Source: Marsupella aquatica
Taxonomy: Eukaryota; Plantae; Marchantiophyta
DNA length: 64,000 nucleotides
Assembly (NCBI GenBank): GCA_973895155.1
Contig: OZ316898.1
Location: 12,427,659 to 12,491,658, forward strand
Direction of reading: 5' to 3'
Below the pieces are notes generated by a model, which saw only the letters and a program-made list of their open reading frames with translations, was not told the origin of the DNA and made no database searches. The position numbers were made by a program, and so were the translations under genes. Shown here in pieces: positions 11,861-64,000 of the stretch. How positions within the stretch are numbered: position 1 is the stretch's first letter; each line of letters starts with the position of its first letter.

Positions 11861-12489
11861 GTATGGTTTTTATTTTATTCTTTAAAGGACGGAATAGAAA
11901 ATTGAATACAGTACAGCTATTAGAAGTTATGTTTACTTTCTAGCTTACTTTTTTCTCCCTTTCCTGACATTCTCTTCTTACTCCTACTGCGGTAGTGTCA
12001 TCCTTGGGAGAAACATGAAATTGGCATTCATATTAGAAAATAAAGAAGTGAAAATATATTAACCTACTCTCTAGTTTTCATTTTTTCCAAGTTAAAATCA
12101 AAGTATACAAAAAGTGGGATGCTCAAATTAAATATTCCTCAAAATTTTAAGGGATTTTTTTTTCTAGGTTTCACAAGTGTTGGGAATTTACTCTGGGTCT
12201 AAACTTTCTCCCAGGGTTACTCCTTAACCATAATTAGCCTAACTGTAGTCAGTACTAACTACTGTTGACAGTAACTTGTCATCTCAAAGCCCATGCATGC
12301 ACCTCTATTTCTATTGTTATAGCATCATGGCCACCAAAGCTGTGGAGATGCTCTTATCATGACAAGGAGTTTATAGCAGTAGAATGGGGTTTCCCAAAAC
12401 CTTCTGCCACCCTAGTGACACTCCAAAATCTCATTTAAACAGAAAAGTTAGTAAAAGCCCAGTAAAAAATGACAGTACAGCATAAATAT

Positions 12490-12570
12490 GCCCAAATAGG
12501 CATGGCTGTGTGGTAGCTCACTTGAGTGATGACTCTAGGTTTTAGGTTTAAATGTTGTGACTGATTGTTC
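12490..12570 (+). mobile_element. Degenerate copy of a tRNA-derived SINE head
   Basis: GCCCAAATAGGCATGGCTGTGTGGTAGCTCACTTGAGTG...TGTTGTGACTGA aligns with the complete copy at 54558-54698 (-). Confidence 0.7.
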
Positions 12571-14113: not shown

Positions 14114-14456
14114 TGTTAGGTATTTACTCAAGGTCTAGGGTTACGACATGTAACCATAGTTAGGCTAACCATAGTCGGAGATGTGGTTAGGTTAACTAGG
14201 ATGCACACTATATGCCAAGCAGTGTTTGCTTGGATAAGTGGAACTTAGACTCATTGTTATGGAGCCACTTGAGAGATGAAGAGAGCTTACACTGTAAAGA
14301 CTTGGTATGGCCGACGGGCTTAGAGTTCAATAAAGCTCTCTTGTGTGTTCCCGTGGACGTAGCCTCGAGGAGGTGAACCACGTATCTCTTGTGTCGACTA
14401 CTTGCGCGTTGAATGTGTCATGTGCTTACCGTTACGAGTGTCATCTATGCTCATCA
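14114..14456 (+). mobile_element. Solo LTR (Ty1/copia-like), 343 bp, with 5-bp TSD GGTTT
   Basis: Begins TGTT and ends ATCA. GGTTT lies at 14109-14113 and 14457-14461. It contains GTGGACGTAG...GAACCACGTA and is homologous to 25797-26141. Confidence 0.88.
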
Positions 14457-20400: not shown

Positions 20401-20805
20401 GGGTACGAAAGTGCTGGGAGGAGGCCTGAATTGGCCCAAACCTGGGGGAGAGATATGGCTCCTTGGCGGCCACTCTGGCCCACTTCCCGGGAGCCTACCA
20501 CCGCCTCCTCCCCTGCTTCTTGGAGCTACGGGCCCTCTCCTACTAAACTTACGCCCATGCGACAGCACTCCAGGAAATCCAATACTTGTTGACGTTGATG
20601 ATGACGATGGCGGAAGCTGCACGTACAACAACACCGAGGGGCTCGCCCTAGAGCTCGAATTCCTCGCATTCAGTAGCGCAATCGCAGAAGTAGAGGCGGA
20701 GCTTCTGATGAGCAGTTGCGGGGACGAGGATGAGGACGCCATCATTGTTGTTGTTCGAGGTGATGATAATGTTTCGGAGCACGAGCGCAGAAGCCCGACC
20801 TCCAT
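17429..20805 (-). CDS. RAF1: Rubisco accumulation factor 1-like protein, ~327 aa, plastid transit peptide plus alpha domain. Exons 20805-20194, 19452-19339, 19058-18957, 17584-17429
   Basis: Motifs QFRPPPS, IIVAAQVYESL, LLYALRTLSARQR.AAEYVIE and GFTTAPGDCLAFMYYRQ match the RAF1 N-terminal/alpha domain. The N-terminus is Ser/Arg-rich. Three phase-0 GT-AG introns. Confidence 0.85.
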
Positions 20806-24100: not shown

Positions 24101-24854
24101 TTTGTCCAGTCTTTTGTTCCATCTTTTGTATCATTAACAATAAGGATTTCTTGCCCAACTCTTGCCCATGTACTCTCATTACCCATTTGCACCTTATCCC
24201 ATATTTTTGTGTTGACTTGAATTACATTACTTGATTACATAATTTCATGTGCTATTTTGAACAAGGTCTCCGCATTGACAACACTTTTCACATGAAATGG
24301 GCAAGAAAGAATTATAGAAATCCAATATTTTAGTTTGATCCACCTAAAAACCTCAGCTTTTAATCAATAGTTCTTTACCTTACCTAAATGTATCTTTGCA
24401 ATGCGTTGGCATTGGGCTTGGCAACAACATGGCCGCAAGACCAACATAGCCACAACACCCTCATGGCCAGAGTGACTGCATCATCATAATGACGAGATGG
24501 TCGTAACAACATATGAGATGTTTAAACAACTTTCTTGCCTTGCTTACATTAATTTACATTATCTACATTTCTTTGGCTCACTTGCATCTTTTTGCATTTC
24601 TTTGCCTCGAGTCAAAATGTTCACATCACCCCAAATCTTTGCCTCAATGCAATGTACATTTAAACATGCCTTGACATTTTTGTCTTCTTTTGCCTTGACA
24701 TTTTTTGCTCACCGTGGCATCTTTTGTTCACCTTGGCATAGTTTTCTCTCCTTGAAATCTTCATCTTCATGATGTTTGCCATATCCCATTATCAATGTTG
24801 ACATTTGTGCCTCACTTAAACATCTTTTGCTCATCTCAACATTTTCTTCTTTGT

Positions 24855-25252
24855 TGAACATCTTTTTATCACTCGACATCCTTTTATCACCTCAACATCT
24901 TTTTATCACTTCGACATCTGCTTATCACTCAACACCTTTTTATCACTTGACACCCTTTTATCAGCTCGACATCTTTTTCTCACTTCGACATTCTCTTATC
25001 ACTCGACATCTTTTTATCACCTCAACATATTTTTATCACTCGACATCTTTTTATCACTTCGACATCCACTTATCACTCAACATTATTTTATCACCTCAAC
25101 ATCTTTTTATCACCTCGACATCTTTTTATCACCTCGACATCTTTTTATCACTTCGAGATGACTTATCACGCGACATCTTTTTATCACCTCAACATTTTTT
25201 ATCATTCAACATCTTTTTATCACCTCAACATCTTTTATCACCTTGACATCTT
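24855..25252. repeat. Minisatellite, ~18-19-bp unit CATCTTTTTATCAC(C)TCGA
   Basis: About 20 degenerate tandem copies run directly into the first Helitron hairpin. Confidence 0.9.
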
Positions 25253-25459
25253 TCGTGCAACGCACGGGCATAGGGCTAGTATTACATAATGTAATAGAAA
25301 AGATCAAACCAAAAAATAGTACAAAAGGCCTAAAAGGGGGGGGGGGGGTTAAGGTTTTCAAGGAATTACAAAATGAAAAATACAAAGACAAAAATCGTTC
25401 TTGACTGGTGATACTTTGTGGTTGTTGTTACTCATTTTTTGCGCCCTTTTTGCGCAAGA

Positions 25460-26220
25460 TTTTTTTCTTAAGAACATCTTGGGCGACACCACATCTTTTT
25501 TTCTTAACGGCATCTTGGGTGACACCACATCTTTTTTCTTAAACAACAACATCTTGGGCGACACAACATTTGTTTTTCTTAATGACATCTTAGATGACAT
25601 GACATCTTTTTTCTTAATAACATCTTGAATGGGAGACATGACATCTGTTGTTCTCAACGACTTCTTGGCCAACACGACATCTTTTGTTATCATCGGCATC
25701 TTGGCCAACACGACATCTTTTGTTCTCACATCTTGGGCGACACAACATCTTTCTTCTCAACGACCTCTTGGCCGATACGACATCTTTATTCTCAACTGTT
25801 AGGTATTGTTTTTAGTCTTGTGACTCATGAGCTAACCACAGTTAGGTTAACTCGGGTTAGGACTTAGCTAATGTTAGCGATAGTGCTGTTGTGTATATAG
25901 CCAGGGTTGGTGCCAGACCCTGGGGGAACTCAAGGTCATTGTTACCGAGCTAGTTGAGAGATAGGGAGAGCTTGCGCTGTGGATGCTTGGTATGGCCGGT
26001 CGGCCTAGAGTGCAGTAAAGCTCTTGTGTGTTCCCGTGGACGTAGTCTCATGTGGAGGTGAACCACGTATCTCTCTGTGTTGACTCTTGTGCGTTGGATG
26101 GTTCATGGGCTTGTCGTTGCGATAGTCGTCTTTGCTCAACATCAATAACCTCTTGGCCGACACGACCTCTTTTGTTCTCAACAACATCAGGAACAACATC
26201 TTGGCTGTCACGACATCTTT
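25460..26220. repeat. Minisatellite, ~33-36-bp unit CATCTTGGGCGACACCACATCTTTTTTCTTAA, interrupted by a solo LTR
   Basis: Degenerate tandem copies at 25460-25796 resume at 26142-26220. Confidence 0.85.
25797..26141 (+). mobile_element. Solo LTR (Ty1/copia-like), 345 bp, nested in the Helitron minisatellite
   Basis: TGTT...AACA termini. Flanks are TCAAC and TCAAT (4/5 TSD match). Same family as 14114-14456. Confidence 0.85.
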
Positions 26221-27371: not shown

Positions 27372-30300
27372 TCAGCTCCTCGTCTGGCTTTGGACCTCAA
27401 CAGTAGTTTGGGGTGTCACAGGTTGTGGAGACTCACATTCTCGAAAATCCACTACACTATGCACAACCTCATTGTCGGAGACTTTAGAGTTCGACCTTTG
27501 CCTTTCGAGCGATTCATTACGAGAGCTGTCATGCTGCCAGATAACTAGGAGAGAGCTTCTGGTCGACACAGACTCCTTGGAAATCAACCAGTTGCCGATA
27601 GACCCAAGCCCATGGTCGGTTGTTGTTGTTGTTGTTGTTGTTGTCACAGACTGGGAACTAGTCTGCAACACGTTTTGAAACAAATCTAGGCGGCTTGAGT
27701 GCAAACCCACGAGTATTAGACCGTATTCTCCTGCTTCCAGCAATTCATCGATTGCTACCATCTCTAGGGCCTTCACAGTTACTCTATCCGGCAGATTCTC
27801 AGCTGCTGCTTGGAGGTGTGCGAGAACTTTTTCATCCAGGCTCTTCTCGTTCTCGTGCTCCAGCTGACCCACAGCGACTTGGATATTATCTTCAGCATGT
27901 GATCCATTTGACTGCTGATGTGGGACTTGGCGATGCTGGTCCATTAGCATCGTTGTTCCCGGGTCCTTTGTAGTTGTCCTATCAGTGTTTGGGGCAGGGC
28001 CGGAGATGCAGATGCAATTTTGCGACAGGTCTGTCGAGTCATTCACTTGCAATGGAGGAGTTGCCGTTTCAGTGCTTGCTTCTAGCCCATCGTGATTTCT
28101 GAGCCAACGAAGTGATCTCCTTCCGCATCTCATGAGCCAGTCTTTGCTAAGCTGGGACGAGGATTTAGGTGACGGACCCTGTTCCTTGGAGGGGATCATC
28201 GAATTGTTTGCTACTCGATCAGGTGAGCAACAATCCTTGAATATGCACTGAACTATAGTGAGCTTCACACCGCTATGGTCTGCCATTCGCTTTGCCAGCC
28301 AAAGAGCCTCGCGATCATCCGGACCACCAAAAAACAAGACCAGGATATCGTTGTAAGGGAGCTGCTGTACCGAAGTCGACGAAGCTGTAGAAGACCCCAA
28401 TCCGCGGTCAACTAGCATCGCCACTGAACATGGGGATGCCTTCAAGACCCGCTGATTGACTTGGAGGAATCCAGGTCTAGCTGATTGTAGGGTTCCGTCT
28501 GGGCGATAGTACTTGTGGTATGGAAGAATGATGATGTTGGCTCGACTCTTTACCGCAGCTAAGCATATGTCTTCATGCATACTGCTCACCCTACTCACAC
28601 TGCGACTTACTTTCACACGGATATTGTTGACCTGACCAAAAGTCCTCATTGATGTTGCAAGCGTATCGTCATTGACCAGTGCATCCTCCTGAAGAAATCC
28701 AGCAACAAGAATCAGAACAGCCACTGTCTAGAGTAATTTGAACAAGAAGACTTTTATAATGTGGAATATTAGTATTGATTATCGACTGTATTGGGGTTGT
28801 CCTTTCACTTTTGTTCAAAATCCTTGGTTTATTTGTCTGTCTGTCCGTCTGGTTGTGTGTGTTTCTTCTAAGCTTCTAGTCTTCACCAAAAGGAGGAATT
28901 GGGAACTCCAACGTTGAGATGCATAAGAAGGATCACTCAATGGAATTTAGGCCGGCTCTAAAATATCGTTGCACTCAGTCAGCATATCCGAGGATGTACC
29001 TCGAAAGTGTTGAGAAACCTTACCAGCTGAGGATCTGTTTCATCGTCCCAGGGTTCTGATGCCTTTAAAGCCTCCGCCATATTCACGCCACCGAGGCGGT
29101 CCGCGAACTCGAGCAGGTGCAGAGCATTTACTTGGAAGAGCTTCGTGTGTCTTCCTTTGCTCATCTCGACCAAATTCATCATACTGGGCAGGTTTCTCAT
29201 ACCATACAGACACACTAGCATCCGAAGTTTGTCGTCGTCCGAAGACTTGGCCTCTAGGTTTCTTCGCTTGTAGGGAGGGAGGTCTCGAGCCGGCTTGTAA
29301 AGCCACATTATCATCGGTGTTGTAGCAACAGTCGCTACTAAGGCCATCAACACCATTATTGCAAAAATCTTCTTGTTGATGACCTAACAGAATAACAGAA
29401 TACCACCAAGCACAAAGAGTTAATAGATTGGACATGAGCCCCGGGACGTTGAAGTGACACGAATGTTAGACTCAACCTACACATCTTACTAGCACAAGAG
29501 TAGTAGAAGTCCAATTGTCATTAATTTCTATTTCCTGATGCAGACTTAGTCATCTTTTGCAACTCCTGTGTCCTATCGGCCAGGATTTCCTGCCGAGCAC
29601 CATGAAGCTACTACGACTGACAGAGGATGAATCACAACTTAACCTTGGCATTATATATTAGATACCTCAGTCTCACTCTCAGTCTCACTCTCAGGACTGC
29701 TCGGAGAAGAGGAAATCTTGGCTGATGCTTCTTGGAAAACTCTTAGCTAGCCAAATTCACTACTAAGCATATTCATCAATTGCCTTGGACTCTTGAACCC
29801 GACTAAGACTACAAGAGCTGGCTTTTAACCTGTACTTCGAGGTGCTTGCTGCTTCTGAGACTGTTAACGAATAACCGAGTTCCGTACTCCAGCATAAGAT
29901 ATAGTGAAGGTCGGACCGTATAAATAACTGTCATAAGACGTAGCCTGAAGGATGTTGTCACCTTTTGATTTTGGTTGGCAGTTCTCATTTGCAAAGAAGC
30001 ATGACATGACGACGTAGAAGTCATGGAAGGCACTCACCCCTTTGCTCAGACCAATGTTGAGAACGACGAGCTCCACCAAGCCCTTCGTACTCATGAGAAA
30101 ACCCAAAGCAGCACTGCTGCGGAGGCTCAAGCCGTGAAATTTTGCTACTATCATGGTGCTCACAACTTTCCCCGCAACCGCCGTAGCTGTTACGAGTAGA
30201 AACGCGGCAACTGAAGATTGAAATCAAATTAAGAACTCTCTTCATGCAATGCAATCTGGAGGTCGTGAACATTAAATTCCATGAAATAATCCAGATCTAG

Positions 30301-40707: not shown

Positions 40708-42174
40708 TCAAGAAGATATTTTGTCAGCATCATCATCTGTGCCAAAGTAGCGGTCACCAAACTCACCCATGCCCGGAAGTACTCGATAATCGTCATTCAA
40801 TCCCGCATCAATCTCGGAGGTCACTATTTTCAACAAGGGGAAACGCTTACATACAGCATGGATACCTTCAGGTGCTGAGATCAAGTTAAGAAATATAATG
40901 TGATTCTCAGGAACTCCCTTGTCTATGAGCAACTCAATAGCCTGAACAGCAGAGTTTCCTGTAGCCAGAACTGGGTCGAGCAGTAAGACATGCCTATCCG
41001 CAATATCCCTTGGTAATTTCTCATAAATAAGTCGCTTGCCATTATCACCATCACGATGAATTAGAATTTTTCCAATCTTGATACCTTTACAACAAGCTCG
41101 CAGTGCATTTTCCATACTTTCTCCACTCCGAATGATGGAAACCCCACAAAGCTGCTTGCAGAAGTCAACTCCAATGTACACAGAGCTTGTTGGCGTAATT
41201 ACTTGTTTCTCAGTGAACGGAAGATGCCCAAGTCCATGCTCAACTACCAAACGTATGAGACGATCTGCATAGAATACGAAATCATATTTGGTAGTCTCTT
41301 GATCACGGATGAGAGTGTGCATACCCCGGATCTGGAAAGTTGACTGAATAACATAGACATTGGGGTAGATTTTGCGGAGGTCATGCTGCCCCAGTTTTGT
41401 CCGTATGTGCTGAACAATAAGATCAATTGCCACATGATTGTCTCCCCCTCTTGGAATGATAACATCAGCATACTTCTTCGATGGCAGGACAAATTCATCA
41501 AAAGATGGCTTCACGAACTTGGAATACTGCTCAATTACACCCTGCACATCTCTTCCTCTCTCTAGCGTATCCCTTTGTATCCTTCGAGCCAGCCGGACAT
41601 CCGCATCTGTGTCGACAAAAATCTTCATGTTCATCAATTCACGAACTCGGCCATCATAAAAAACTAGAATCCCCTCCATGATAATCACATCGACAGCATT
41701 TACCTGGCGGGATTTGTCACTGCATCGCTGATGCTTCTTGAAATCATACACAGGAATCGCCACTGGTTTACACTGCTTCAGTTTCCGCAGGCATTCCAGT
41801 AGCTGCTCTGTGTCAAACGCATCTGGGTGGTCAAAATTGTACTCTCCAACATTATGTGACTCCTCTGGAGTCAGACCCCTGTAGAAAGAGTCTTGATTAA
41901 CAAGAACAACCCGGTGGTCATGGAGTTGGTGAATTATCATGTCACATACTGTGGTCTTCCCGGATGCCGTGCCCCCGGCAACCCCAATGACAAATGGGGT
42001 CTTTGTGGCTGTACTCTTGATTTTTGCGTTGGCCTGCTGCTGCTGCTGCTGCTGCAACCCATTACCATCTTCCTGGAGTCGCGTTGGGACTCCACTCGAG
42101 ACCTGGACGTGGTTGTTATTGTTGAATGCTAAACCGATGGCACTCTCCATGCCCTGATCGACCCCCGACATCAT
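40708..42174 (-). CDS. UKL: Uridine/cytidine kinase with C-terminal UPRT-like domain (UKL/UCK family), 488 aa, intronless
   Basis: P-loop GVAGGTASGKTT, plus NFDHPDAFD, DTDADVRLARRI.RD..ERGRD, LLDPVLATGNSA and PGMGEFGDRYFGT, all in one uninterrupted ORF. Confidence 0.97.
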   Translation of the reverse strand: MMSGVDQGMESAIGLAFNNNNHVQVSSGVPTRLQEDGNGLQQQQQQQANAKIKSTATKTPFVIGVAGGTASGKTTVCDMIIHQLHDHRVVLVNQDSFYRGLTPEESHNVGEYNFDHPDAFDTEQLLECLRKLKQCKPVAIPVYDFKKHQRCSDKSRQVNAVDVIIMEGILVFYDGRVRELMNMKIFVDTDADVRLARRIQRDTLERGRDVQGVIEQYSKFVKPSFDEFVLPSKKYADVIIPRGGDNHVAIDLIVQHIRTKLGQHDLRKIYPNVYVIQSTFQIRGMHTLIRDQETTKYDFVFYADRLIRLVVEHGLGHLPFTEKQVITPTSSVYIGVDFCKQLCGVSIIRSGESMENALRACCKGIKIGKILIHRDGDNGKRLIYEKLPRDIADRHVLLLDPVLATGNSAVQAIELLIDKGVPENHIIFLNLISAPEGIHAVCKRFPLLKIVTSEIDAGLNDDYRVLPGMGEFGDRYFGTDDDADKISS

Positions 42175-48756: not shown

Positions 48757-51714
48757 GGCAACGTCAGGGACAAAGGCTCACCTCGCCTGCTCAAATAATG
48801 GCCAAAACAACGACGGAAGTGACCAAACAAGCCTACTGAAAACAAGATCCCGCAACAAGAATAGGTATGCAGCGAGCACATGGGAGAATCAGATCAGATG
48901 ATTGAGGTTCCTCTTCTTCTCTACATTTCGTAAAAGCCTCTAAAAGGTACAGGAAAGCCCCGATTGCTAGCCAGCCAGAAAGCCTGCCTATTTGCCCCGG
49001 CGTGTCATGAACTCCACCTATCAAACTTCCTCAAATTCTGTGTTGCTTAATATCGTTCATTCCTCAATTATCAGTACACGCCCGGCGAGCTTCCCATCCC
49101 TTAACCAAGATTGCAGCCTATTCATACAATGCCGAAATCACAACTGTAAATTCATCTCTGCCTCATTCCCCACGAGAAAATGCCACCAACCCACCTCGGA
49201 AGAAATGCCCACCTCTCTACAGACTAAGACTACAGAAATCACCAAAAAGACTGTAAGAGACTCGATGAATGTCGCAAGGTGGTCCAAATTAATGGACTTA
49301 AGAAACTAATAGCTATACAGGCAGCTACAACGCAAGCGAAATTAATTGTCTTGGTTGCTGTTCCCTCCCTCCCTGCATCGTGCAAACTTACTCGGTGCTC
49401 TGCGTGGCACGAACAACACACAGTCGTGTATGAAATGACCGCCTGGGCCGAATGTTCACGGAATGTACCACTCCCGCAGGACGAGGGGCCGAAACGCAGA
49501 GTGCAGCAGCCGTAACAGGAGCACTGCTTCTATTGTAGTGGTGAATCATTGTCCCACCGAGAGCCTGCTGACTACCAAGCGCATACATTTTGCCTGCCCG
49601 AATCTGACTGGAGGGGACACCTTTTGATCGTTCGTTCTGCTTCTTCCTCCTGTCCCCTGGATTCCGGAGATTGCAAACTGCCCACGGAGTTGTTCTCAGT
49701 GGTCCAAGTGTGATAAACTCCTCCACCCTTCTTACGAACTCACGTACGCAGTTGTGAATAAGTACGTCTCGATACTTACGTCCATCAGCTTCTCCCTTGC
49801 TTACGTCCTGTAGTTCCTTCCTCTGGTCCAGTTCTCATCTCACTTTTGATCCAATCCAAGCCAACCCCAGCCCAGACCAGTAAAGTGTGTTTGAGAACTT
49901 ACGATAAACCGCTGAGTAGGTATCAACCAAGGAAACTCAAATGTTGAGGAAAAGATGCCGACCTTTGTGAGATGCTCGTGGAAAGCATGGTAATATGCTG
50001 TCTTACTGAACTGGAATATTCCTTATCTGCTGATAGGCAATGATTGTCTGGCTCATTCTTCGGCAGCTGTGTTTTGAGTTTCATTCCTTATCTGCTGCAT
50101 AGTCAAATGATTGTCTAGCTCATTCTTCAGCGGCTGTGTTTGAGCTGCTAGATTTCAGAGTTTTTACTGATAAGAGGAAGAATGATCACTCCAGCTCCCC
50201 ACTTAAAATAATGCTGTATTTGATGGATTTTTTATTTCTTTGTGAAATCGCGTGACTCGTTGTGACTGTTGAGTTGTTCTGACTGTCATTCGTTTTGGCT
50301 GGATGGAGCAGGCGTTTGCAGTTTCTCTTGGCATCTTCAATTATTTTGAGTGGTCTCTCCTTCCGATCCACGCTTTCTTGGCCACTTCGGCTTGGGCTTC
50401 TCCTGGCAATCGGGTCTGACATCCTTTCGTTCGAACATGATTGTGCAGAGTGAAATATGATGAGTATCTTCCAAACACATTTCACATTTCACATTAGAAA
50501 AGGTTCAAATGGATTGGAGCGATGAATTGGCGAGAGTGACAATATTGCCCTAACGTAACAAAAGCAAATTTCACATGTTGGTATAATAGGCAAGTTCTCG
50601 TTGTTTGACTTCTCCCTCTCGCCCAACGTAAGAACAGCAAGTCATGCTAAGCAAAGTTGTCGAGTGCAGAAGAACTGACTCAAAAATTGCTTAACGTGAA
50701 GAGTAGAAAAGCTCTGTACTAAAAGCTACACGCCCAAACGAGTCCCACAACTGGTGTATACATCAGGATCGGAAGCCACGTTGTAAGCAAATACGACAGA
50801 GATGAAACGAACTATGTATGTTGGAACGTTTTCATCATCAGAGGAAAAGAAAATGATAAATCCGCTCTGATAGAAGGGAGTAGTCATCGGGCCAATCTTC
50901 TTTTTACAGCACAATGGCCGCGAGAAAGGTTCCTCCTTAGTACAACTTCACCTATTCTCTCGTATTAAGCACTACTTACAGTTCAATTCTAATTCCCATT
51001 CCGTCCTAATGACTTGCCTCTTCAGCAAATACCGCGTGTTCGTAGTACAAATAGGAAAATCTAGTAGATAGAATAACTTCCACCATAGAATATCATCAAC
51101 CTAATATCCTCAATCGTAATTTCTTTGATTTCTTTGAAGTAGGGGTTCCATCCATGGCAGCCTCCATACCAAAATATGGCCAGCGAGGACAGATCTATAA
51201 GAACAGCAGCCCATCCTTCATAAACCTCCATTCCTATAAATCCTTCCCTCCAGATCCTCATGATATAGCCTACGGCCGCGATCTCCTCCAGTGTAAATTC
51301 GAAAAATGCTAAGATATGGAGGGTTTTAAGCGATTTCACCTTCAAAGAATGACCATGGCCTTGGAAGCAACAGCCCCCAACGTGAGCCCCTGTTATCAGA
51401 AGTGTAGAAAAGAGTGATGCAATTACAAGCTAGCTTCCCATCCCGGAAAGGTGAAAGTGACAGCGCTTTGTTGAAAACAACACCTTGAAGGTTTTGTAGA
51501 TCATGACCGGGACATGGAGAATTGCAAGTTAGTCTACAAAATGTGCCACCTCCAAGATTGTAGAAGAGGCTCTGAAGAGTACCCCTAGGTCTTCGGATTC
51601 ACGGTGATTCTGAAAGAGACTAGAAGTGAATTTACAGGCTAGTGTCCCTCGCAGAACTGAACACGCTTTCTAGACCACCAAGGGGAGAGATTTTTACCAT
51701 CGTACAATCACAGC

Positions 51715-53453
51715 TTATTTGTGTTGAAACTTTGGTTTCCTTTTCTCAACAAAGGCCGACATTCCTTCTTTCTGATCCTCGAGAGAAAATGCCGCACAGA
51801 ACAATGAATGTTCCAGTCTAATGCCCTCCTGCAGACCCATCTCGTAGGCAGAATTGACAGCTTCCTTAGCCATGGCAACAGAAGGTCTTGACAGCTCAGA
51901 TATGCTCTTTGCTAGTGCAACTGCCGCAGCCACTAGTGCCTCATTGTCTCCTGGAATCTGTGCACCAACAATATAGAGGGTGAACATGACTCCACGAGTT
52001 TTTGTTAAGCTTCATGCAAAAATCGTCATAAGAAGCACTACAATCGAAGAAACACTTTAGTTAAGTGAAAGAATTGAAAATGATTACGTACGACGCGGCT
52101 GACCAGGCCCCTCTGCACAGCTTCTTCAGCGTTCATAAAAGCTTTGCCTGTCAAAATCATCTCCATTGCACGCGACTTTCCCACTTGGCGGATCAGCCGT
52201 TGGGTTCCTCCAATACCAGGGATAACACCCAAATTGACTTCAGGCTGTCCAAACACAGCTTTCTCTCCTGCGAGAAGAATGTCACACAGCAGGGCTAGCT
52301 CACAACCCCCTCCAAGGGCATACCTATACCATTGAAAGAATTCAACCAAGAGGATCAGAAGAAGACTTCATATCACACACGCAACCCAATAGTCCACGAA
52401 GTAGAGTAAGGTTACTTAGTAAACAAAAGGCTGGAATTGTACATAGAGTTTTAAATTGATGGATGGAATGAGTGTCTTCGTACATCACACAAGAGATTCC
52501 ACATCAAAGAGTACCAAGTAGGAACTTGCCCATTGATGGCACCAATTACAGGCTTTCGTATGGCTCTCAAAGAATTCCAATCGCTAAATATTCGAGAATT
52601 ATAAGCCTCCGCGAATGATTTGTCCTTCATTTCCTTAATATCGGCTCCAGCTGCAAAGGCCTTATCCTTACCTGTAATTACAATGGCTCCGACCTGCGAA
52701 TCCAGCAACCAGCAAGCTTGCTCACTCCGTGATGAACAATTGCGCAGAAAACAGGGCTTCACAAATTACCCTGCAGAGGAGCTGAACCTATTTCTTTACT
52801 CTAATGCATGAGAATGAAAAATTGAAGTTTGCATGCAACCGAAGAAATGATACTAATGCTCATGTCAATCTTTTGCTCTTGCAAGGTCTTGCCACTCCAT
52901 AAAACAAACCAACACAACAGGTCACAGAAATGCTGGAGGAATCCAGCGAGGTCTCCACTAAACTTAGTGAGGGTGCGATAAATGGAAATTAATAATGGAT
53001 GGTACAAACCGTCTCTGACCCGTCAAACGCTTGGCAAGCGTCAACCACCTCGATCATCAAAGCCTCAGACAGAGCATTTAGGGCCTTCGGTCTATCCAAT
53101 AAAATCAATCCTACAGAACCACCTTCCACCAGCTCCGCCTTTATTGTTGTGTAGCTTTTGCCTGCAAGTGCGCCTTCAGTGTTATGCTCAAGTGTTTCGG
53201 AAACCGACCCACCAGCCTCCTGACTGTGAGATCTTCTTCCTCTACGAAATGGCTGACAAGGATCTGTCCTCCATGTAGCACCCGAAGAGCTTCTGCATAC
53301 AAGCCAAAGGCTTTCCAATCCCAACCCATGTCTAAGGACAGGTGGGGGACTGCACTCGTTGCCTACTATCCGTAGCAGAACTCGACTTAGAAATCCGGTG
53401 GATGGCCCGGTTGGACATAGCTTTGCAGCTGCACCTGAAAATCGCCATTCCAA
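51715..53453 (-). CDS. Enoyl-CoA hydratase (crotonase, ECHS1/EchA8-type), probably mitochondrial. Exons (start uncertain)-53010, 52693-52530, 52323-52092, 51957-51715
   Basis: Motifs [52 protein letters not shown] and [17 protein letters not shown]. The intron at 52324-52529 is GC-AG. The start codon is unresolved. Confidence 0.92.
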
Positions 53454-54557
53454 TCAGACAGAGAGACACCTCCGTTCGTCGAGGACGCTCATTGCAACAA
53501 AATGCAACAACAGCGCATGCAAGCCAGCCATCTCGGTGAGTGAGGAGAATGAAATCATGAAAATCTTAGAGAATCTCCAGACCCTTTGCCAAACAGCAAA
53601 AAAATTCGTCGAAAGCATTTCAGAAAAACTGAGCTTCTTCTTCTTCAGTATAAGTTCACCACACATATACAGATGACGAAGATTGCAGGATTAAGGACAA
53701 CACTGCCATTAGTGTACAAAGGCAAGCTGAGCTTCAGCTTCGTCTTCAGCAAGTTCAGCCAAAGATCAAAGAGAGAACGAACATTCAAAAATGAAGAGAG
53801 CGATTTCAGGATTCCGGACAACACTGCCTTTAGTGCAATTCCAAGGAGAAGAACGAGTAATTCCTTTCCAGAATTCGTCTCAAAGGACGATAGGAGAGCA
53901 CACAAGTTACTTGGAGTGGAACGCAGACACGATTTGAACAATATTCATTGTTGAGCCAATTGTTCTCAATTGTGGGTCTCAATTGTGCGTTGAGCAGCAG
54001 TGGTAGTAGTTGGTCTCTTACTCACAGAAGAAGCAGACGAGAGCAAGGGCGATCGCAGCACGATTCGCAAGGAGCAACCCATGAGATGATGCATAGTCAT
54101 GATGCCCTGATGAAGAAGCCGGCCGAGCTCTTCCGGATGGACAGATTCTCAGCGCGATTGCACTCTCCCATGCACCAAAAGCCCTCAACGCTGCTCACCT
54201 TTCGACAGTAAGCTCCTCACATTCCGATCCGGCCTCCTTTCATTAAATTATGCAAAGACAAATCGACGCAACTCGCCAATTCGCTTGACATTTAGTCTGC
54301 AGAGTCTAAACATTCTTGCCACAGAGTGCGAGACATTATTTCTCAAATGCTAACTTTGGTTTCCATGGAGTACGTTTCTCCTTCAATAGAACCCTTCTTC
54401 AACCCGAAATGAAGTAAGTACTGGGGGCTTAAAGGAAGTCATTTTTGTGCAGGCTCTTTCTTCATCTTACCATGAAAGCTCCAAATGAAGCCTACTCTTA
54501 AGGGCCAATAATCTACAGTGAATACTCTAGACCATAACTCCCAATAATTTTGATATT

Positions 54558-54698
54558 TTTTATTTTATTTTATTTTAAGGAGAAACCTGTGAAACCCCAC
54601 AGAATAGGTTTCACAGAATAGTCAGTCACAACACTCGAACCCAAGCCCTATCAGTTTTCACTCAGATGAGCTACCACTGAGCCATGCCTCTCTGGGCA
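54558..54698 (-). mobile_element. Complete tRNA-derived SINE (~140 bp) with A-rich tail and 17-bp TSD
   Basis: Minus strand has an A box (TGGCTCAGTGG), a B box (GGTTCGAGT) and an (AAAAT)n tail. CCAATAATTTTGATATT flanks both sides (54541-54557 and 54699-54715). Confidence 0.88.
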
Positions 54699-56084
54699 CC
54701 AATAATTTTGATATTGAAGTTGAATAAGGTCAAAAAAATTAATGAGAATGGACAAAAGTGACATGTACTCTAAATAAAGATAAAACTAAAATGAGGATGG
54801 ACCAAAAACCAGGATGGGGCAAAGATTAACCAAAATAGCATATAACTTTTGTTGTGCAGGATTTTTCTTCTTATGTTTATGTTCCTTGAAGGGGTCATGA
54901 TGCTAGTCAACGAAAAAGAGCCAGGCACCTATACGCCAAGAAGTTATGGGTGAGGATTATGTTGTTATGGTACGAAGCAGAGTGCTTCAAGCTGACATGT
55001 TGTCGACAGAACCTACAGTGTTTGTTAGTCACCTGCACAAAGACTAATACCTACTGTTTGCTTTTCAGTTTTGAAAGAAAAAAACATATGTTAGTGCATA
55101 GACTGAAATGTGACCTACAAAGTGTCTCCTGTTGCTTGCAGCCTGTTTCATAAGCCTGGATGGACTGTCTAAGAGATAGGCTTTGACAGAAAGTCCAAAC
55201 AAGATTCAGATAGCATCTCTTAAATGTGACCTACAAAATTGTCTTGATTGATTGCAGCCTGTTTCAATTAGTTACCAATTGGTAAGTTAGGTGCTCTATC
55301 ATGCTCAAACTACTCACTCAGGGTGTCCTTCACAAAAGTAGTCCTTAGTTTTTAGTTGATGTATAGTATCTGACTTCAAATGATTTTAGAAACTTCTCAA
55401 ACTTTTGCAGGTAATAGATTGGACATCTGAGAACATGCTTATAAAATTTAAGCTTGAACATAGATCCAAACGTTGTCAAAATAAATGGGGGAAATTTTCA
55501 CAAAAGGGAACTGTCCTTCCCAAAAGCAGCCAACCCCAATTTAAGGAATACTGAAGTATTAGATTAATTCCAATTTTATCTAAATAATATTAATTAATGA
55601 ATGATCAACCTCTTTAACATTTGGTGGGATAGTCAAAAACTTCAAATATTTTGTTACAAGATCTTTATAACAATGCATCACTAAATGACATCAAATACCT
55701 CTTGATCCATGCACAAATCCTTAATTAAACTGTCATTCATTGTTTCAATTGTCTATTTAATTATTATAGGGTTGAATACAAAAAAGATTGACACGCACCA
55801 GGGTGCGTGACCTACAATCATAGTAAGTACCACCCTTTAATTAGTTAGTTTCTTTACAACAATTAATAGGATTGTTGTATATTACAATGTCTACTGGACA
55901 TTCATTTGAATATCAATAATATCATGCCTTAATATCACCAAACTAAGGCCCCACTAACTAATATTATATCTTAAATAAACTAACCAACTTAGACAATAAG
56001 ACTTGTCTAAACTTGAGTTCTCTGGCTACTACTATTCTGAGTTGCCTTTTAAACTGTATGCTAAACTACATGCTTCATTACTAT

Positions 56085-59000
56085 CTAGGATTTGTCACTT
56101 GCTATGCATGTCAAGAGATAGTCTCTTGCCTTGGCAGGAACATTCTTTGGAATTCCTACCAGCCCTGTCACTGGTCCTTTGCGTGCTTTGAAATACCACA
56201 AGGCAGAGGAAACATCTATTGTCTCAACTTCCTTGTATATTGGAGCTGGATCACGTTCCCATTTCTTATCCCAAGAATCTGCCCACCGCTCTCTTGGCTG
56301 CCAGTCTGATTGACCACGTTGCTTCTTTGCCATAAATGGTCTAAACCACTCAACGCCACATACATGAGTAAGAAGGTTTTGTTCATTCACTGGTCCTTCT
56401 ACCACATCTGTAACAACTAACCCCATATGGACGGGATAAACATCCAGGTCTGAGTCGTCCGGCTGTACCAACACATAACAGCCCTTCACAACATCAACCC
56501 TAGGGTTAAAACTCTCAGGAGGTTTATCTTTTGCTGGTCCCACATAATCCACTGTTGCCTCCAACTCACATGCCACATTTTGATATTCTGGTGGAACGTG
56601 CTCTCTCCATATTGATAAAGGCCAAAACCCGTATTCCAAGTTGTGTGCACCTTCAGGTTCATATTGCACCTGCTCACCCTGTAGAGTATCTACAATATCA
56701 TTCCAATAATTGATGAGAGTTGTCCAACGTCGCTTTGGTTCTTCCTCTTTTGTTCGCTTTAGAATAAACTCAAAGAATGACACATGCTTCTTCAACCCTG
56801 TCAGCACTTCAGGAAGCATTTTCAACTCCATCATTGGTAGCCGTTTGGGCACCCCAATTGGGATGTGAGGACTTTTGTCATCTTTCCATGACCACATTTC
56901 AATACCTTCCTTGGGTAACCATCCCTGATCAGTTGATTTCATTTTGTATTGAAAGCATGGCATACTATCATGACGAACATAGAACCTAAACAACCTGGGT
57001 TTTAAATGCCCCACCAATGCCTCAGGGCCCTTCAACATGAATGGAGCTAAGTAGTTTTTGAAATCTGGGACCTCCTGTAGAGAATGTGGGACTGCATTGG
57101 GTGTCCTTGCTCTCATGAACAAGGACATTAACTCAGGCAATGAGTATGTGGGGTTATGCATCATAGACTCTGAAAAATGCCCGAACATACCGTCAACGTC
57201 CTCATGAGTATGCCCAACCACCATAAAACCAAGATGAACCTCTTCAAACAACTCCCTTGCCGTCAATAATGACAAATAAGCCATCATATATCTGTTCTTG
57301 TTGTCTGAGGCACAATTATCCAGTTGTAGCTTCAATACTCGTGGAAGGGGCCTGAACTTTGGTGCCTCAGGTGCTCCATCACAATGTAACAATCTCAAAA
57401 TGCTTTTAAATAAAACCCTAGTCAGACCCTAAACCCCAATTTAGGGTTTAGGGTTAAAACCCTATTAATGAAACCTTGGCTAGGAGGAGCAACAACTACA
57501 CAAAGTAGAGTGTCAGTGTGTGTGAGCTTATATTATTAAATAATAATAAATTAAAGGATTGTGAGTAAAGTACCTAGGCTTGAGATGTAGGCAATGTCAT
57601 CCTCAAATGCTCTAAGGACACTTGCCTCCAAGATATCTGCTCTCCCAAAAAGGAGGTCTTTAAAAAGACTTGTCGAGTCTGGCCCCTCCACAAGTGATTT
57701 GACCATTGGATTTGGGTTTTCCAACATCCTTAGTATTGAATCAATTGACCCAATAGTGATGTTGACATTACCTGGCCACACTCCAACATGATATTGGGCT
57801 ATGGCCTTGGGACCATGACCATGAGTAAGGATACCAGTGACAGTAATTGGGAACTTTTGGGCACCATCCACATGCTTAGGATTGAAGGGCATTCTTGGGA
57901 GAGCTGTCTTTGAATGATCCATCTTATCATGAATAAGGCATAACACTTCCTTTGGACGATGGATGGACTCATATCTCCAGGTATGATAGCACATTCTTTG
58001 TTGTGTGTGGTCTTGGTGATGTTCCTCCTCGTCACACCTTAGGCCCTCTAACTCTTCCTTAGCTCCTGTAAGGTTTGATTTCCGTTGAAGCAACTCACTA
58101 CAAGTTGTACACTTTGAAAAGTTGTTGCTCTTTTTGTGACGCGAGAACTCCCTGAAATACATCTGATGTAGATGACTCAAGATGGGTTGGGAAATTGGAG
58201 GAAGACCAGCCTCCTTGTTGACAACATTAACCCTATTTCTAATATTCTCCCAAGTCAGATTTGTTGGCAATTCCCTCAAAACCATCCTTGTATTATCTGC
58301 CATGGTTCTCAACTTGGCTGGATGATGATTAGCTGCCTCCTCAATAATCTCTTTCATTGACATGAACGCTTGAGATACTTTCTCGGACATACGCCTTTTT
58401 CCAGCATTACCATGGGTACCTATGTTCATTCCAGCCATCACAGTCTTCTTCAAGGCATAAAATTGAGTCTTTTGTCTTGAATGAATGATTCTCCATGCCT
58501 CCAAGCACAATACTTTGCCCTCCACTGCTAGAATCCTTTCTCCAGTATCCAAGTGTATTGTATTTTTAATAGCCTTGATTTCCTCCTCCTTGCACTCCGC
58601 AAAAGATTTTGACCACCACTTTTGCCTAATTGCCATAGCCAAGTTGCGGTCCAAATATTGGCAACAATGTTCACTAAAACAGTCCTTAGTGTTTATCAAC
58701 AACACATCTTGACGTGCCAAAGATGTGTCTCTTCTAGATGTATGGGAAGATGGACTCTTTCTTTTCCTACTTTTATGGACGTAGGACCGCTTGCCACTTG
58801 TTGGAGATGTGTTCCCTCCCACAGCTTGCCTGATGTTGTGGAAAGACAACAAGTTGCCATCCTTGGCAATGAGTTGGTCTATCGACCAAGCTTTTAAGCA
58901 ATCTCTATGCTTCAGATGATCTATTGTAGCTCCCTCGACAAAATCGTTGATCAGAATTCCCACATGTGTATTCCCAAGGGTGACATCCCCAAGCTTCACT

Positions 59001-59203
59001 ATAGGATCTAGAACATGTCTAGTTGCCACTGCAAAAATCAACTTGTTCTCATCCACCACCTTTACAGGCATGCCCATCCACAAGGCCTTTGGTAAAACTA
59101 CTTCCACACCAAACCGACTCTCATTATGGTTGTTCCCATCAGAATTTTGATTGACTGGATCTTGATCATCACCAACAGTGCCAAACACATCCTCCGATTC
59201 CAT
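56085..59203 (-). mobile_element. Sola-like (DUF7869-type) DNA transposase in two ORFs (59203-~57574 and ~57398-56085), ~980 aa if joined
   Basis: FSKCTTC...HH metal-binding motif, followed by LIHDKMD, LQLDNCASDNKN and GFMVVGHTHEDVDGMF, which supply a plausible acidic triad. The family assignment comes from motif recall, not from a search. Confidence 0.8.
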
Positions 59204-59519
59204 GGGAGCTCAAAAAAGTTGATTCCTTTCCCATACAAGGTAACCCCCAATCATGTCCTTCAAAAGTTTGCCATCTTCGCATAGAATGGTCTCGTAAAAA
59301 ACTTCCTCCAATAGAAGAAGAACTCTGTCCGCCCCAAGAGGAACATTGTGACAAACCCTGGAAGGATCAAGACTTATCACGCGACCTTTTCCAACCTATT
59401 TCTCACATATGCCTATAATAACTTGTCCGCCTTCCCTGATCCAGACTGTCAATGTCACCATAATAATTATGATCCTGCACATCAGAGAATATCATTGTAA
59501 GCATACAGTCCTGTCACGT

Positions 59520-60207
59520 CCGTCAACTTCACTGCACTGTCCTGTCACGTCGGTCAACAAGCAGAATGTAGTCAATGCACTGCACTGCACGCGACTGGTC
59601 GCGTGACCCTAGAGGTACCACATATACCGGCAACAGACTATGCATGGTCCGTCAGTCATTTCAAGTGAATGAGAACGACCACAATCGATTACGATCAATC
59701 ATTTCACATCCACTCAGAACAAATCAGTGGACAGTACCAGTTTACCAATGAGTGGACACTGGACAGTCAATAACTAATGAGGACTGTAATGCTAATAAGC
59801 ACCAGTAAAATGTCCATGAACTGCATTGTCCTATCACGACCATCAATAAATAAGCAAAATGTAGTCAATGCACTGCCCTGCACGCGACTAGTCGCGTGAC
59901 CTTAGTCAAAGGGTGTAGGGATAATAGGGTCTACGACATAGAAGCTAGAAGGCTAGGCCCAAACTCTAGCTCGTACTTGGTACTTCATAAGTAAGATACG
60001 ATTGCGCGTGAGACAGGAAGATACAGTTACGGATCTGAAGGCACCACACATACCGGTAACAGATTATGCATGGTCTGTCAGTCATTTCAAGTGAATGAGA
60101 ACGACTACAATCGATTACGAACAATCATTTCAACTCCACTCAGAAAAAATGAGTGGACAGTACCAGTTTACCAATGGGTGGACACCGGACAGTCAGTAAC
60201 TACTGAC
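59520..60207. repeat. Imperfect direct duplication (~270 bp) upstream of the transposase; the second copy carries ~130 extra bp
   Basis: 59520-59608 resembles 59812-59901, and 59612-59780 resembles 60037-60207. The segment 59902-60036 occurs only in the second copy. Confidence 0.88.
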
Positions 60208-60521
60208 CCTCATAAGAAATCTCAGTACTTCACTAGCAATCAGTATTCTCGGGGCGGTCGCCAAACGTGAAATTAAAGCCATAATTAGAGGAAACCTGAA
60301 CTTCCCGCCAATTCTAATACGCGCCAGTCAAACGCGCACTCTCTTCTAGAAACCACTATGTACAATGACTAGTGGAGACTAAACAGTATAAAGCATTGAG
60401 ATGATCCCTACTGCTCATTCCCCCACGCATTCCACTTTCTAGCTACTGGATAATCTATTCGCACATTAGCTCTCTCATTTCCAATTCTTAGTCTCGGTCC
60501 GCATCTCTTGTTTGAAGGGCG

Positions 60522-61054
60522 ATGACTACTCCGCTGAGCTCGAAGAATGAGGATGTTCCGACAGACGATTCAGAAGGTTTGACGTATCGAATTCGTGGTA
60601 CTCCTTACAGAATGTGTCAACGATGTAATATAATGTTTACGGTGACTAAATTGGGTCAAATGTTTTGTGAGAGATGACATTGTTCGCCACATTTGTCGAT
60701 GGAAGATCACATGGAGAGCAATCCGATAGAGATGACTACAAAGATGGCATCAGGGGAGAAGTTAAAGGGCAAAGCCCTCGTGGAATCCGTTTCGGGGGGG
60801 AGAAGTTGAAGGCCAAAGCATGCATCGAATCCATTTCGGGGGAAGCAGCAGCAGACGCTAAGAGAGTCAAGAAGGAGGCCAAGAAAGTGGATGCACCGAA
60901 GAAAAGGCAATTAGAGATGAACGAAGATTCTGATTTGTATTACAGAAAGAGCAAGCCGAGAAAATCTATGGACGTTAGGACTTGGGCAAAGGAAGAATTC
61001 TTGGATTCAAGGGAATCCACACCAGACACCGATGAGTGGATGCCTTCATCTTGA
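60522..61054 (+). pseudogene. Disabled small Cys-rich/charged ORF divergent from the transposase
   Basis: MTTPLSSK...MCQRC...FCER*HC with TGA at 60675-60677, then a frameshift in the G7 run (60794-60800). Correcting the frameshift restores the internal peptide repeat SGEKLKGKALVESV-SGEKLKAKACIESI-SGE. Confidence 0.5.
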
Positions 61055-61287
61055 AATGACTGACTCGATCGAAGTCAACAATATTTTGAGTAGTCAAAGA
61101 TTAAAACTACAGATTCAAGAGTAGTTCAAGTTAGAACTTGTTATAGATACTGTGTAGCTTAATTTTGTCCCGTGGAAAATAGTGTTCGAAAGACCAGGTC
61201 AGTTAAATTCCTGGATAGTGCTAGTGGATATGGATTCCACATCCGAAGTCCTTCGGGATCGATGTAACCATCATCCACAAGATTCCT

Positions 61288-64000
61288 CTGACCTCTAAAA
61301 CATTTTTGCGACCGATCGCGTGATGAAACGAAGACGTTGGTTTTAAAATAGATTTCTGGCCAATTCACTAGGCTGTCGACTACAATAAACAATATAAAAA
61401 AGACCTGAGATAAATTGGTTCACGCGACTGTGCGCGTGATGAACTACATGTGTAACCAAAAAAACAAGTCATCCTACTAACAAGTTGAGATCAGGCAGAT
61501 ATGAGAAATAAAGGGCGATTACGTCTAAGAGTGCAGAGCTTTTGCTGACCTCTAAAACATTAACGCGACCGGGCGCGTGATGAAACGAAGACCTCGGTTC
61601 TAAAATAGATTGCTGGCCAATTTGCTAGGCTGTCGACTACAATAAACACTATCAAAAGACATGAGATAAATTGGTTCACGTGATTGTGCGCGTGACGAAC
61701 TACATGTGTAACCAAAAAAACAGGTCATCCTACTAACAAGTTGAGATCCAGCAGATCTGAGAAATAAAAGGCGATTACGTCTAAGAGTGCAAAGCTTTTG
61801 CTGACCTCTAAAACATTAACGCGATCGGGCGCGTGATGAAATGAAGACCTCGGTTTTAAAATAGATTGTTGGCCAATTCGCTAGGCTGTCGACTACAATA
61901 AACAATATCAAAAGACACGAGATAAATTGGTTCACGCGACTGTGTGCGTGACGAACTACATGTGTAACCAAAAAAAAGGTCATCCTACTAACAAGTTGAG
62001 ATCAGGCAGATCTGAGAAATAAAGGGCAATTATGTCTAAGAGTGCAGAGTTTTCGCTGACCTCTAAAATATTAACGCGACCGGGCGTGTGATGAAACAAA
62101 GACCTCAATTTTAAAATAGATTGCTGGCCAATTCGCTAGGCTGTCGACTACAATAAACAATATCAAAAGACACGAGATAAATTGGTTCACGCGATTGTGT
62201 GCGTGACAAACTACATGTGTAACCAAAAAAATAGGTCATCCTACTAACAAGTTGAGATCAGGAAGATCTGAGAAATAAAGGGCGATTACGTCTAAGAGTG
62301 CAAAGCTTTCGCTGACCTCTAAAACATTAACGCGACCGTGCGCGTGATGAAATGAAGACCTCGGTTTTAAAATAGATTGCTGGCCAATTCGCTAGGCTGT
62401 CGACTACAATAAACAATATCAAAAGACACGAGATAAATTGGTTCATGCGACTGTGTGCGTGACGAACTACATGTGTAACCAAAAAAAAGGTCATCCTACT
62501 AACAAGTTGAGATCAGGCAGATCTGAGAAATAAAGGGCAATTATGTCTAAGAGTGCAGAGTTTTCGCTGACCTCTAAAATATTAACGCGACCGGGCGTGT
62601 GATGAAACAAAGACCTCAATTTTAAAATAGATTGCTGGCCAATTCGCTAGGCTCTCGACTACAATAAACAATATCAAAAGACACGAGATAAATTGGTTCA
62701 CGCGATTGTGTGCGTGACAAACTACATGTGTAACCAAAAAAATAGGTCATCCTACTAACAAGTTGAGATCAGGAAGATCTGAGAAATAAAGGGCGATTAC
62801 GTCTAAGAGTGCAAAGCTTTCGCTGACCTCTAAAACATTAACGCGACCGTGCGCGTGATGAAATGAAGACCTCGGTTTTAAAATAGATTGCTGGCCAATT
62901 CGCTAGGCTGTCGACTACAATAAACAATATCAAAAGACACGAGATAAATTGGTTCATGCGACTGTGTGCGTGACGAACTACATGTGTAACCAAAAAAAAG
63001 GTCATCCTACTAACAAGTTGAGATCAGGCAGATCTGAGAAATAAAGGGCAATTATGTCTAAGAGTGTAGAGTTTTCACTGACCTCTAAAATATTAACGCG
63101 ACCGAGCGTGTGATGAAACAAAGACCTCAATTTTAAAATAGATTGCTGGCCAATTCGCTAGGCTCTCGACTACAATAAACAATATCAAAAGACACGAGAT
63201 AAATTGGTTCACGCGATTGTGTGCGTGACAAACTACATGTGTAACCAAAAAAACAGGTCATCCTACTAACAAGTTGAGATCAGGAAGATCTGAGAAATAA
63301 AGGGCGATTACATCTAAGAGTGCAAAGCTTTTGCTGACCTCTAAAACATTAACGCGACCGTGCGCGTGATGAAACGAAGACCTCAGTTTTAAAATAGATT
63401 GCTGGCCAATTCGCTAGGCTGTTGACTACAATAAACAATATCAAAAGACACGAGATAAATTGGTTCACGTGACTGTGTGCGTGACGAACTACATGTGTAA
63501 CCAAAAAAAAGGTCATCCTACTAACAAGTTGAGATCAGGCAGATCTGAGAAATAAAGGGCAATTATGTCTAAGAGTGCAGAGTTTTCGCTGACCTCTAAA
63601 ATATTAACGCGACCGGGCGGGTGATGAAACAAAGACCTCAATTTTAAAATAGATTGCTGGCCAATTCGCTAGGCTGTCAACTACAATAAACAATATCAAA
63701 AGACACGAGATAAATTGGTTCACGCGACTGTGCGCGTGACGAACTACATGTGTAACCAAAAAAAAAGGTCATCCTACTAACAAGTTGAGATCAGGAAGAT
63801 CTGAGAAATAAAGGGCGATTACGTCTAAGAGTGTAGGGCTTTCGTTGACCTCTAAAACATTAATGCGACCGGGCGCGTGATGAACCAAAGATCTCAGTTT
63901 TAAAATAGATTGCTGGCCAATTTACTAGGCTGTCGACTACAATAAACAATATCAAAAGACATGAGATAAATTGGTTCACGCGACTGTTCACGTGACGAAC
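61288..64000. repeat. Satellite array with a 255/256-bp monomer, at least 10.6 copies, running off the window end; 511-bp dimeric higher-order repeat
   Basis: The anchor (C/T)TGACCTCTAAA lies at 61288, 61545, 61801, 62056, 62312, 62567, 62823, 63078, 63334, 63589 and 63845. Confidence 0.97.

Follow-up and report, generated by a model that had tools for sequence, protein, structure and literature searches.

The locus described here, a putative large DNA transposon of the liverwort Marsupella aquatica whose transposase gene lies between copies of an 18-bp palindrome, has close parallels in giant elements of two algae. We analyzed a window of 64,000 nucleotides (contig OZ316898.1 of GenBank assembly GCA_973895155.1, forward strand, 12,427,659 to 12,491,658), and positions below are those of the window. 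Sola1-1_Ec32, a 21.5-kb giant Sola1 transposon of Ectocarpus, is likewise a large DNA transposon; its transposase is transcribed divergently from an accessory gene, and its authors propose that the ParB-like/methylase product of this gene acts on the very element that encodes it, by binding and modification (PMC12477816). Unlike the element in the window, no palindrome arrays have been reported from it, and its host is a brown alga rather than a land plant. Our tentative assignment to Sola1 is based on a Pfam DUF7869 match (1.3e-36). In the red alga Bostrychia, giant EnSpm-related Plavaka elements encode PAG3, a protein with ParB-like and 2-oxoglutarate oxygenase parts (bioRxiv 10.1101/2025.02.11.637652). 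They resemble the element in the window in holding tandem arrays of inverted repeats, interpreted as self-binding sites: the window has a 256-bp array with 22 sites, and eight relatives have arrays likewise. They differ in transposase superfamily and accessory domains, and in the window the arrays lie 5' of the transposase, with a site also in the opposite subterminal region.

Two further systems share parts of this design. The VANDAL21/VANC anti-silencing system of Arabidopsis has short, lineage-specific motifs, concentrated in non-coding DNA, that evolve by the formation of tandem repeats and differ between related elements (PMC5735166). The likeness is one of form, as VANC motifs are not palindromes while those in the window are, and the VANC transposase is Mutator-like rather than of DUF7869 type. 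No VANC-family protein was found among the element's open reading frames (ORFs) in the window, which match only DUF7869 apart from one weak, chance-level Pfam match. The TNPA-binding repeats of En/Spm (CACTA) elements are also short sites in multiple copies, found subterminally and around the promoter, and the protein that binds them is encoded by the element and controls its promoter too; the DNA-binding domain of TnpA is a helix-turn-helix pair, and transposases themselves have been argued to be sequence-specific regulators of their cognate copies (bioRxiv 10.64898/2026.08.24.746577). Here, by contrast, the transposase begins with Tudor/KOW-like barrels, and its DUF7869 core is not that of CACTA.

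Such elements are already described in the algal papers of 2025, and the element in the window belongs to this known design. New here are a corrected start and two stops for the transposase gene, evidence on copy number and on one edge of the element, an 18-bp frame kept in three lineages with paired arm changes, a second cluster of sites in one relative, and recurrent independent amplification 5' of the transposase in eight relatives. The sites, their confinement to the element, the repeated DNA in which they lie, and a layout conserved in relatives with changes in both arms are all observed directly. We consider it quite likely, judging from these sequence patterns, that the dyad serves the family in cis, as the binding site of a dimeric protein encoded by the element itself.

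Palindromic sites and the repeated unit that carries them

We searched the window with a strict pattern (CACGCR-N6-YGCGTG), a looser one (ACGCG-N6-CGCGT with at most one mismatch) and the frame CACG-N10-CGTG. The strict pattern has nine exact matches, at 55792, 59588, 59881, 61421, 61933, 62188, 62699, 63210 and 63721, all within 55792-63738, where 100 shuffles gave an expectation of 0.00. Twenty matches to the looser pattern fall without exception in 59589-63993 (0.23 expected), and none of the 12 matches to the frame comes before 55792 (0.24 expected). The first 55 kb of the window holds zero full sites, with half-sites there at background level.

On the 3' side of the transposase gene, CACGCACC-AG-GGTGCGTG lies at 55792-55809, 276 bp from the transposase stop. 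On the 5' side, CACGCGAC-TG-GTCGCGTG occupies 59588-59605, 127 bp from the transposase ATG, and the perfect 18-bp palindrome CACGCGACTAGTCGCGTG occupies 59881-59898. At these three sites, the dyad extends to 8-bp arms around a 2-nt spacer, and the left-side palindrome is altered relative to the upstream sites at the same inner positions in both arms. The site versions in the satellite retain shorter arms of 6 bp (type A) or 5 bp (type B).

This satellite runs from 61288 to the window end at 64000 and continues beyond it. Its 256-bp period is repeated 10.6 times, with a higher-order repeat of 511 bp. Each unit contains a type A site (CACGCG-ACTGTG-CGCGTG) and a type B site (ACGCG-ACCGGG-CGCGT), giving 22 sites in total. 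The exact ACGCG-N6-CGCGT survives in only seven of them, the remainder having decayed chiefly by CpG transitions, which also make up 22 of the 53 variable columns among the monomers. Such an excess of CpG decay suggests past methylation of the window's copy. Decayed versions recur within the 511-bp unit, that is, they have been re-amplified.

An initial annotation of this DNA had quoted individual site positions, all of which a direct check recovered, and our zero count bears out its remark that no copy lies in the first 55 kb. Its figure of more than 20 copies also agrees with ours, at 22 satellite sites, two upstream of the transposase gene and one downstream. The partial copies that it reported near 59378 and 60000 are present as half-sites (at 59378 and ~60003), the former inside the transposase coding segment. 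Its description of the sites needs amending in two respects. The two variants that it saw in every satellite unit do correspond to two sites per unit, but only seven of the 22 are still exact; and the spacer that it took to vary between fixed arms is not free, given the 8-bp arms and 2-nt spacer of the upstream and left-end sites.

The sites outside the satellite lie in repeats of their own. Directly 5' of the transposase ATG, 59505-60206 comprises two copies of a 300-430-bp repeat with one perfect palindrome each (repeat families D5, D9 and D12). The number of these repeats differs among copies of the element, as seen in contigs of public runs that join 59784 to 60250, 60323 to 59802 and 60006 to 59744. 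The left palindrome belongs to a 241-bp subterminal unit (55749-55989) that some other copies of the element contain as a tandem duplicate, while a minority lack 55793-55851 and some have no palindrome there; the corresponding joints, 55989 to 55749 and 55792 to 55852, occur in three runs.

Evidence for a single repeated unit comes from Logan contigs of four public runs, which we mapped onto 54601-60600, using word depth as a rough indicator and not as a copy count. A contig of single-copy depth spans 55010-55559 with 0 differences, and to the right of 55559 there are only short contigs (150-800 bp) with word depths 40-55 times those of the flank contigs (runs X1 and X2 in both cases). Repeated DNA, in roughly tens of copies, begins at ~55.53 kb, takes in the transposase and the upstream repeats and reaches at least 60.6 kb, and up to that point no single-copy junction was found between the transposase and the array side. 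From this, the left boundary of the multi-copy element can be placed at about 55530-55545, with the palindrome of 55792-55809 some 260 bp within it. The element takes up at least 8.5 kb of the window (55.53-64.0 kb) and runs past its end. The AATT at 55538-55541, within the ~15-bp uncertainty of the left edge, is a candidate 4-bp target duplication; it would fit the AWWT duplication that is a hallmark of Sola1 (PMC3845634, citing Bao et al. 2009), as a candidate only, with the partner end beyond 64000. No inverted partner of 55400-56090, such as a terminal inverted repeat would have, was found within the window, the element's other end lying beyond 64000.

The initial annotation had suggested that the transposase, the satellite and a divergent Cys-rich ORF may form one mobile unit carrying the palindromes. 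Palindrome, transposase and array side are indeed repeated together to at least 60.6 kb, and it is the ORF that lacks support as a gene. The region in question, on the plus strand at 60522-61054, has small open frames of 51 and 126 amino acids; we rejected it as a supported gene on account of in-frame stops, an internal 44-bp tandem repeat (60753-60842), and the lack of any Pfam match or any counterpart in the relatives compared. These frames might be the first exon or 5' region of a putative accessory gene.

The transposase gene and the layout in its relatives

The transposase gene is on the minus strand and has two exons, seen as open frames of 550 and 437 amino acids ~170 bp apart. The 5' exon (57574-59461) is open apart from two early in-frame stops in the window's copy, TAG at 59398-59396 and TGA at 59212-59210. 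We place the start at the ATG at 59461, and not at 59203 as initially assumed, because the translation aligns with the N-termini of two relatives, L001 and L003, which share with it the segment 59395-59213. Since every contig of the four public runs has G at position 59212, where the window has A, the window's copy appears to have been damaged recently, while most of its family keeps this codon open. The intron (57399-57573, borders approximate) corresponds to a frame break at which relatives diverge past "...ISSLG"; at 57400-57460, it contains telomere-like CCCTAAA/TTTAGGG units of the plant type in both orientations. The 3' exon (56085-57398, a 437-amino-acid frame including the stop) encodes the DUF7869 core (Pfam PF25273 at 1.3e-36), and its protein is 58-65% identical to liverwort-type proteins, Calypogeia fissa among them.

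The N-terminus was modelled as two small beta-barrels (predicted local distance difference test, pLDDT, 84). Their structural matches are generic, of the Tudor/Agenet/KOW/SH3-like kind (Foldseek E 2e-3; VIA Z at most 7.0), and for that reason we dropped any functional inference from the barrels. After them come a Cys cluster and then a conserved helical region; this part, between the barrels and the catalytic core, is our candidate for DNA binding. The N-terminal domain of one relative weakly matches the TNP1/EN/SPM Pfam family (E 0.014). As a separate observation, the 1277-amino-acid protein P0046 contains ~15 tandem copies of the same small barrel domain that opens the window's transposase.

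The proteins closest to this transposase are of liverwort type, including those of C. fissa. In the C. fissa locus L001 (56-65% protein identity), about 6-8 sites of the form TCACGAACCATGGTTCGTGA lie at 7034-7560, directly 5' of the transposase ATG at ~7760, in an array with periods of 83, 173 and 256 bp; several of the sites are CpG-decayed. Two other features of this locus deserve mention. Within its transposase intron, at 9730-9747, there is a decayed site, CATGCACCATGGTTCGTG, whose left arm equals CACGCACC save for a C-to-T change in a CpG, and just 3' of the transposase gene a Ty3/Gypsy retrotransposon (12200-20700, with gag, RNase H, integrase and chromodomain) cuts the element.

A third lineage is represented by L003 and by L005, an ENA contig that extends it (~50-54% identity). 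Here a 56-bp array 5' of the gene holds ~22 sites of the form CACGACC-YRCC-GGTCGTG, and a lone site lies 277 bp 5' of the ATG. In L005, a second cluster, of five perfect CACGACCGGCCGGTCGTG, is found ~10.6 kb further upstream, beside a compositional break and host-like DNA, with zero sites between the array and this far cluster; the cluster is probably subterminal. The sites of both lineages have the same 18-bp frame and the same outer CACG/CGTG as those of the window and differ from them in the inner bases of both arms. With both arms changing in concert from one lineage to another, a site read by a protein dimer, as first proposed in the initial annotation, appears to be the most economical reading, and the symmetry kept through these paired changes is to us the strongest sequence-level argument for a dimeric reader.

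More distant relatives keep the layout with other palindromes. When we scanned metagenome contigs of the Joint Genome Institute (JGI) for the N-terminal exon, 80 further loci of more distant relationship were recovered. Private CpG palindrome arrays lie directly 5' of the transposase in 6 of the 12 distant full-length relatives with upstream flank, and no palindrome array was found in any of the ~53 partial-match loci of the scan. The palindromes (TTTGGGTCGATCGACCCAAA, TTTACGGACGCGCGTCCGTAAA, TTTCCAGTCGACCCACTGGAAA, TTCCACTCGACCGAGTGGA and TTCCTCTCGGYCGAGAGGAA) are unlike the window's motif, and the array periods include 22, 34, 53 and 77 bp, with others in the range of 22 to ~80 bp. As the periods differ, the arrays were amplified independently many times, which points to possible selection for many sites, with mutational bias as the alternative. 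The initial annotation had named the lack of both motif and satellite in other transposase copies as the circumstance that would undo its proposal; what we found is palindrome arrays 5' of the transposase in eight relatives.

Three loci of C. fissa from a distant DUF7869 lineage (L002, L006 and L007) are organized differently. They contain a divergent multi-exon gene with N6_N4_Mtase-like and NIF-phosphatase domains, and a private palindrome, GCCTCGA..TCGAGGC, is present in every gap of this gene. Within this palindrome, the outer GCCTCGA is kept, and the inner three bases change on both arms (..TAC-N-GTA.. versus ..GAT-N-ATC..), a paired change of the same pattern as in the window's lineage.

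Candidate proteins at the dyad and competing explanations

Under the explanation that we prefer, the 18-bp dyad (CACG-N10-CGTG; here CACGCGAC..GTCGCGTG) would be the transposon family's own binding site for an element-encoded dimer. One such site would be placed in subterminal DNA 3' of the transposase gene, and 5' of the gene the dyad would have been multiplied by tandem duplication, with the two-unit repeat arising first and the 256-bp satellite afterwards, all within a single large DNA transposon of DUF7869 (Sola-like) type that is present in many copies and has its other end beyond the window. The binder would be the transposase, acting through the Cys-rich and helical region between its N-terminal barrels and its catalytic core, and it may use the sites to recognize its own copies, both in end recognition and in the control of its own promoter. 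Protein binding, the binder and the effect of binding are what we infer here. The full explanation, a cis-element of one DUF7869 element with the transposase as leading candidate, is the best that we can offer, held at somewhat short of even confidence, and the choice of the transposase as binder, given an element-encoded dimer, is similarly tentative.

We favor the transposase over an accessory protein. It is the sole protein seen beside the arrays in every locus. In L005, its exon is uninterrupted, the sites are well preserved, and a Pfam search of the 42 ORFs in the 10.5 kb between the two site clusters returned no ParB, methylase, NIF or Ulp domain and a single DUF4283 match.

Several points weigh against this explanation. 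Palindromic sites lack orientation, which is unusual for the end-recognition sites of transposases. The modelled barrels resemble Tudor/KOW/SH3-type folds (Z ~7, weak) and appear to include no known sequence-specific DNA-binding domain. Palindromes dispersed through all gaps of the divergent gene in L002, L006 and L007 seem a better fit to an accessory protein that marks the element. The contig evidence for repeated DNA reaches 60.6 kb, short of the satellite. Finally, the latest expansion of the array was probably neutral, to judge from the CpG decay of the array and from the renewed copying of already decayed sites within the 511-bp repeat.

An accessory protein is the most serious competitor for the role of binder, and one that we regard as possible but doubtful. 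The dyad would then be read by a ParB-like or methylase-like protein of the element, presumed to be encoded beyond the window, and the arrays would load this protein onto the element, marking or de-repressing its own copies in the manner of plasmid centromere or operator arrays. In bacteria, F sopC, bound by SopB, and the KorB operators of RK2 consist of palindromes of 13-16 bp, arrayed or dispersed, to which dimers of the ParB family bind; being prokaryotic, with a role in segregation or repression, they provide an analogy only. Published precedents are the gene with ParB and DNA-methylase parts opposite the Sola1-1_Ec32 transposase (PMC12477816) and the tandem arrays of inverted repeats beside a ParB-like gene in the Bostrychia Plavaka element (bioRxiv 10.1101/2025.02.11.637652). 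The divergent gene of L002, L006 and L007, with its N6_N4_Mtase-like and NIF domains and a private palindrome in every gap, belongs on the same side. Set against these, L005 has both the arrays and the far cluster but no detectable accessory gene, and the ParB likeness of the L002-type exon is weak (AlphaFold pLDDT 31; Atlas template-modelling score 0.42-0.47 to ParB_N proteins). This exon of L002 has no Pfam ParB match, searches of PDB sequences with it came back empty, and no match to it was detected in L001, L005 or the window by profile, phmmer or tblastn. Within the reading of an element-encoded dimer, we thus rate a ParB-like accessory protein as the less probable binder of the two.

That the dyad serves the host, as a promoter element for a host factor or as a CpG-rich promoter module, with the satellite as a neutral by-product of unequal crossing-over, is unlikely in our view. 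The arrays do always lie in the 5' region of the transposase, and both the share of CpG transitions among the variable columns (22/53) and the recopying of decayed sites in the 511-bp repeat are as this explanation would have it. The ACGCGT/CGCG core, moreover, resembles plant CGCG-box motifs. The sites of close relatives (CACGAACC.., CACGACC..), however, are without CGCG and yet keep their dyad symmetry through changes in both arms, and we rejected a host CGCG-box of the CAMTA type as the main explanation for this lack of CGCG. Distant lineages carry quite different palindromes at the same place, which no single host factor explains, and a purely neutral origin has to contend with arrays that arose independently, with different periods, in at least eight lineages.

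It is less probable still that the satellite and the transposase belong to two neighboring elements, or that the satellite is the host's own, the shared motif reflecting the nesting of related elements. This would be compatible with contig evidence that ends at 60.6 kb and with a right end of the element beyond the window, but the same motif with the same GTGA flank occurs on both sides, there is no single-copy DNA at 59.2-60.6 kb, and arrays take the same relative position in eight relatives.

The least plausible alternative, which we consider highly improbable, is that the palindromes act in transposition or replication as hairpins or cruciforms and not as protein sites: single-stranded sites do fold (-5.2 to -8.2 kcal/mol, z down to -4.3), but only into weak 5-7-bp stems, which led us to reject a hairpin function, stems this short do not sustain a stable cruciform in duplex DNA, and the satellite versions that were amplified are those that have lost inner pairs.

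Surrounding sequence and significance

The DNA around the insertion contains several further features. Between the adjoining host gene and the transposon, short repeats of very high depth, resembling short interspersed elements or miniature inverted-repeat transposable elements, lie at 54590-55000 and 55399-55439, and many contigs end within them; ARAGORN found no tRNA in the repeat-rich 54-56 kb. The host gene itself (51700-54100, minus strand) is enoyl-CoA hydratase/crotonase-like, with a weak ECH_1 match on its first exon. Elsewhere in the window, host genes encode a uridine kinase/UPRTase, in a single 488-amino-acid open frame at 40708-42174, and a CHX-type antiporter at 27372-28724; a Raf1-like gene is found at 20140-20805. 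Two minisatellites at 24812-25796, with units of 19/37/74 nt and 36/75 nt, are strongly C/T-rich on the plus strand and unrelated to the palindrome. In run X5 (organism C), contigs mapped to 56345-59735 contain transposase pieces 96-99% identical to the window's, at low depth and without its flank; these could be from a close species or the result of a transfer.

Should the dyads indeed bind a protein of the element itself, these elements would offer a clean natural series of site and protein variants: the outer bases are equal in three close lineages, the inner ones vary in both arms, and in more distant lineages unrelated palindromes take the same place. From such variants one could learn how the private recognition codes of transposons evolve, and they might be a source of sequence-specific DNA-binding modules for use in land plants. 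The design, previously noted only in passing for algae, is extended here to bryophytes and to the promoter region of the transposase itself. A bolder idea, about which we remain doubtful, is that bryophyte DUF7869/Sola-like lineages each keep a dyad that co-evolves with an element-encoded dimer and is amplified at the transposase promoter as a private operator, and under this idea, itself held no more firmly, each lineage might activate, protect or mobilize only its own copies. If this holds, transposon lineages would split by a general mechanism, VANC-like but palindrome-based, that is present in several transposase superfamilies.

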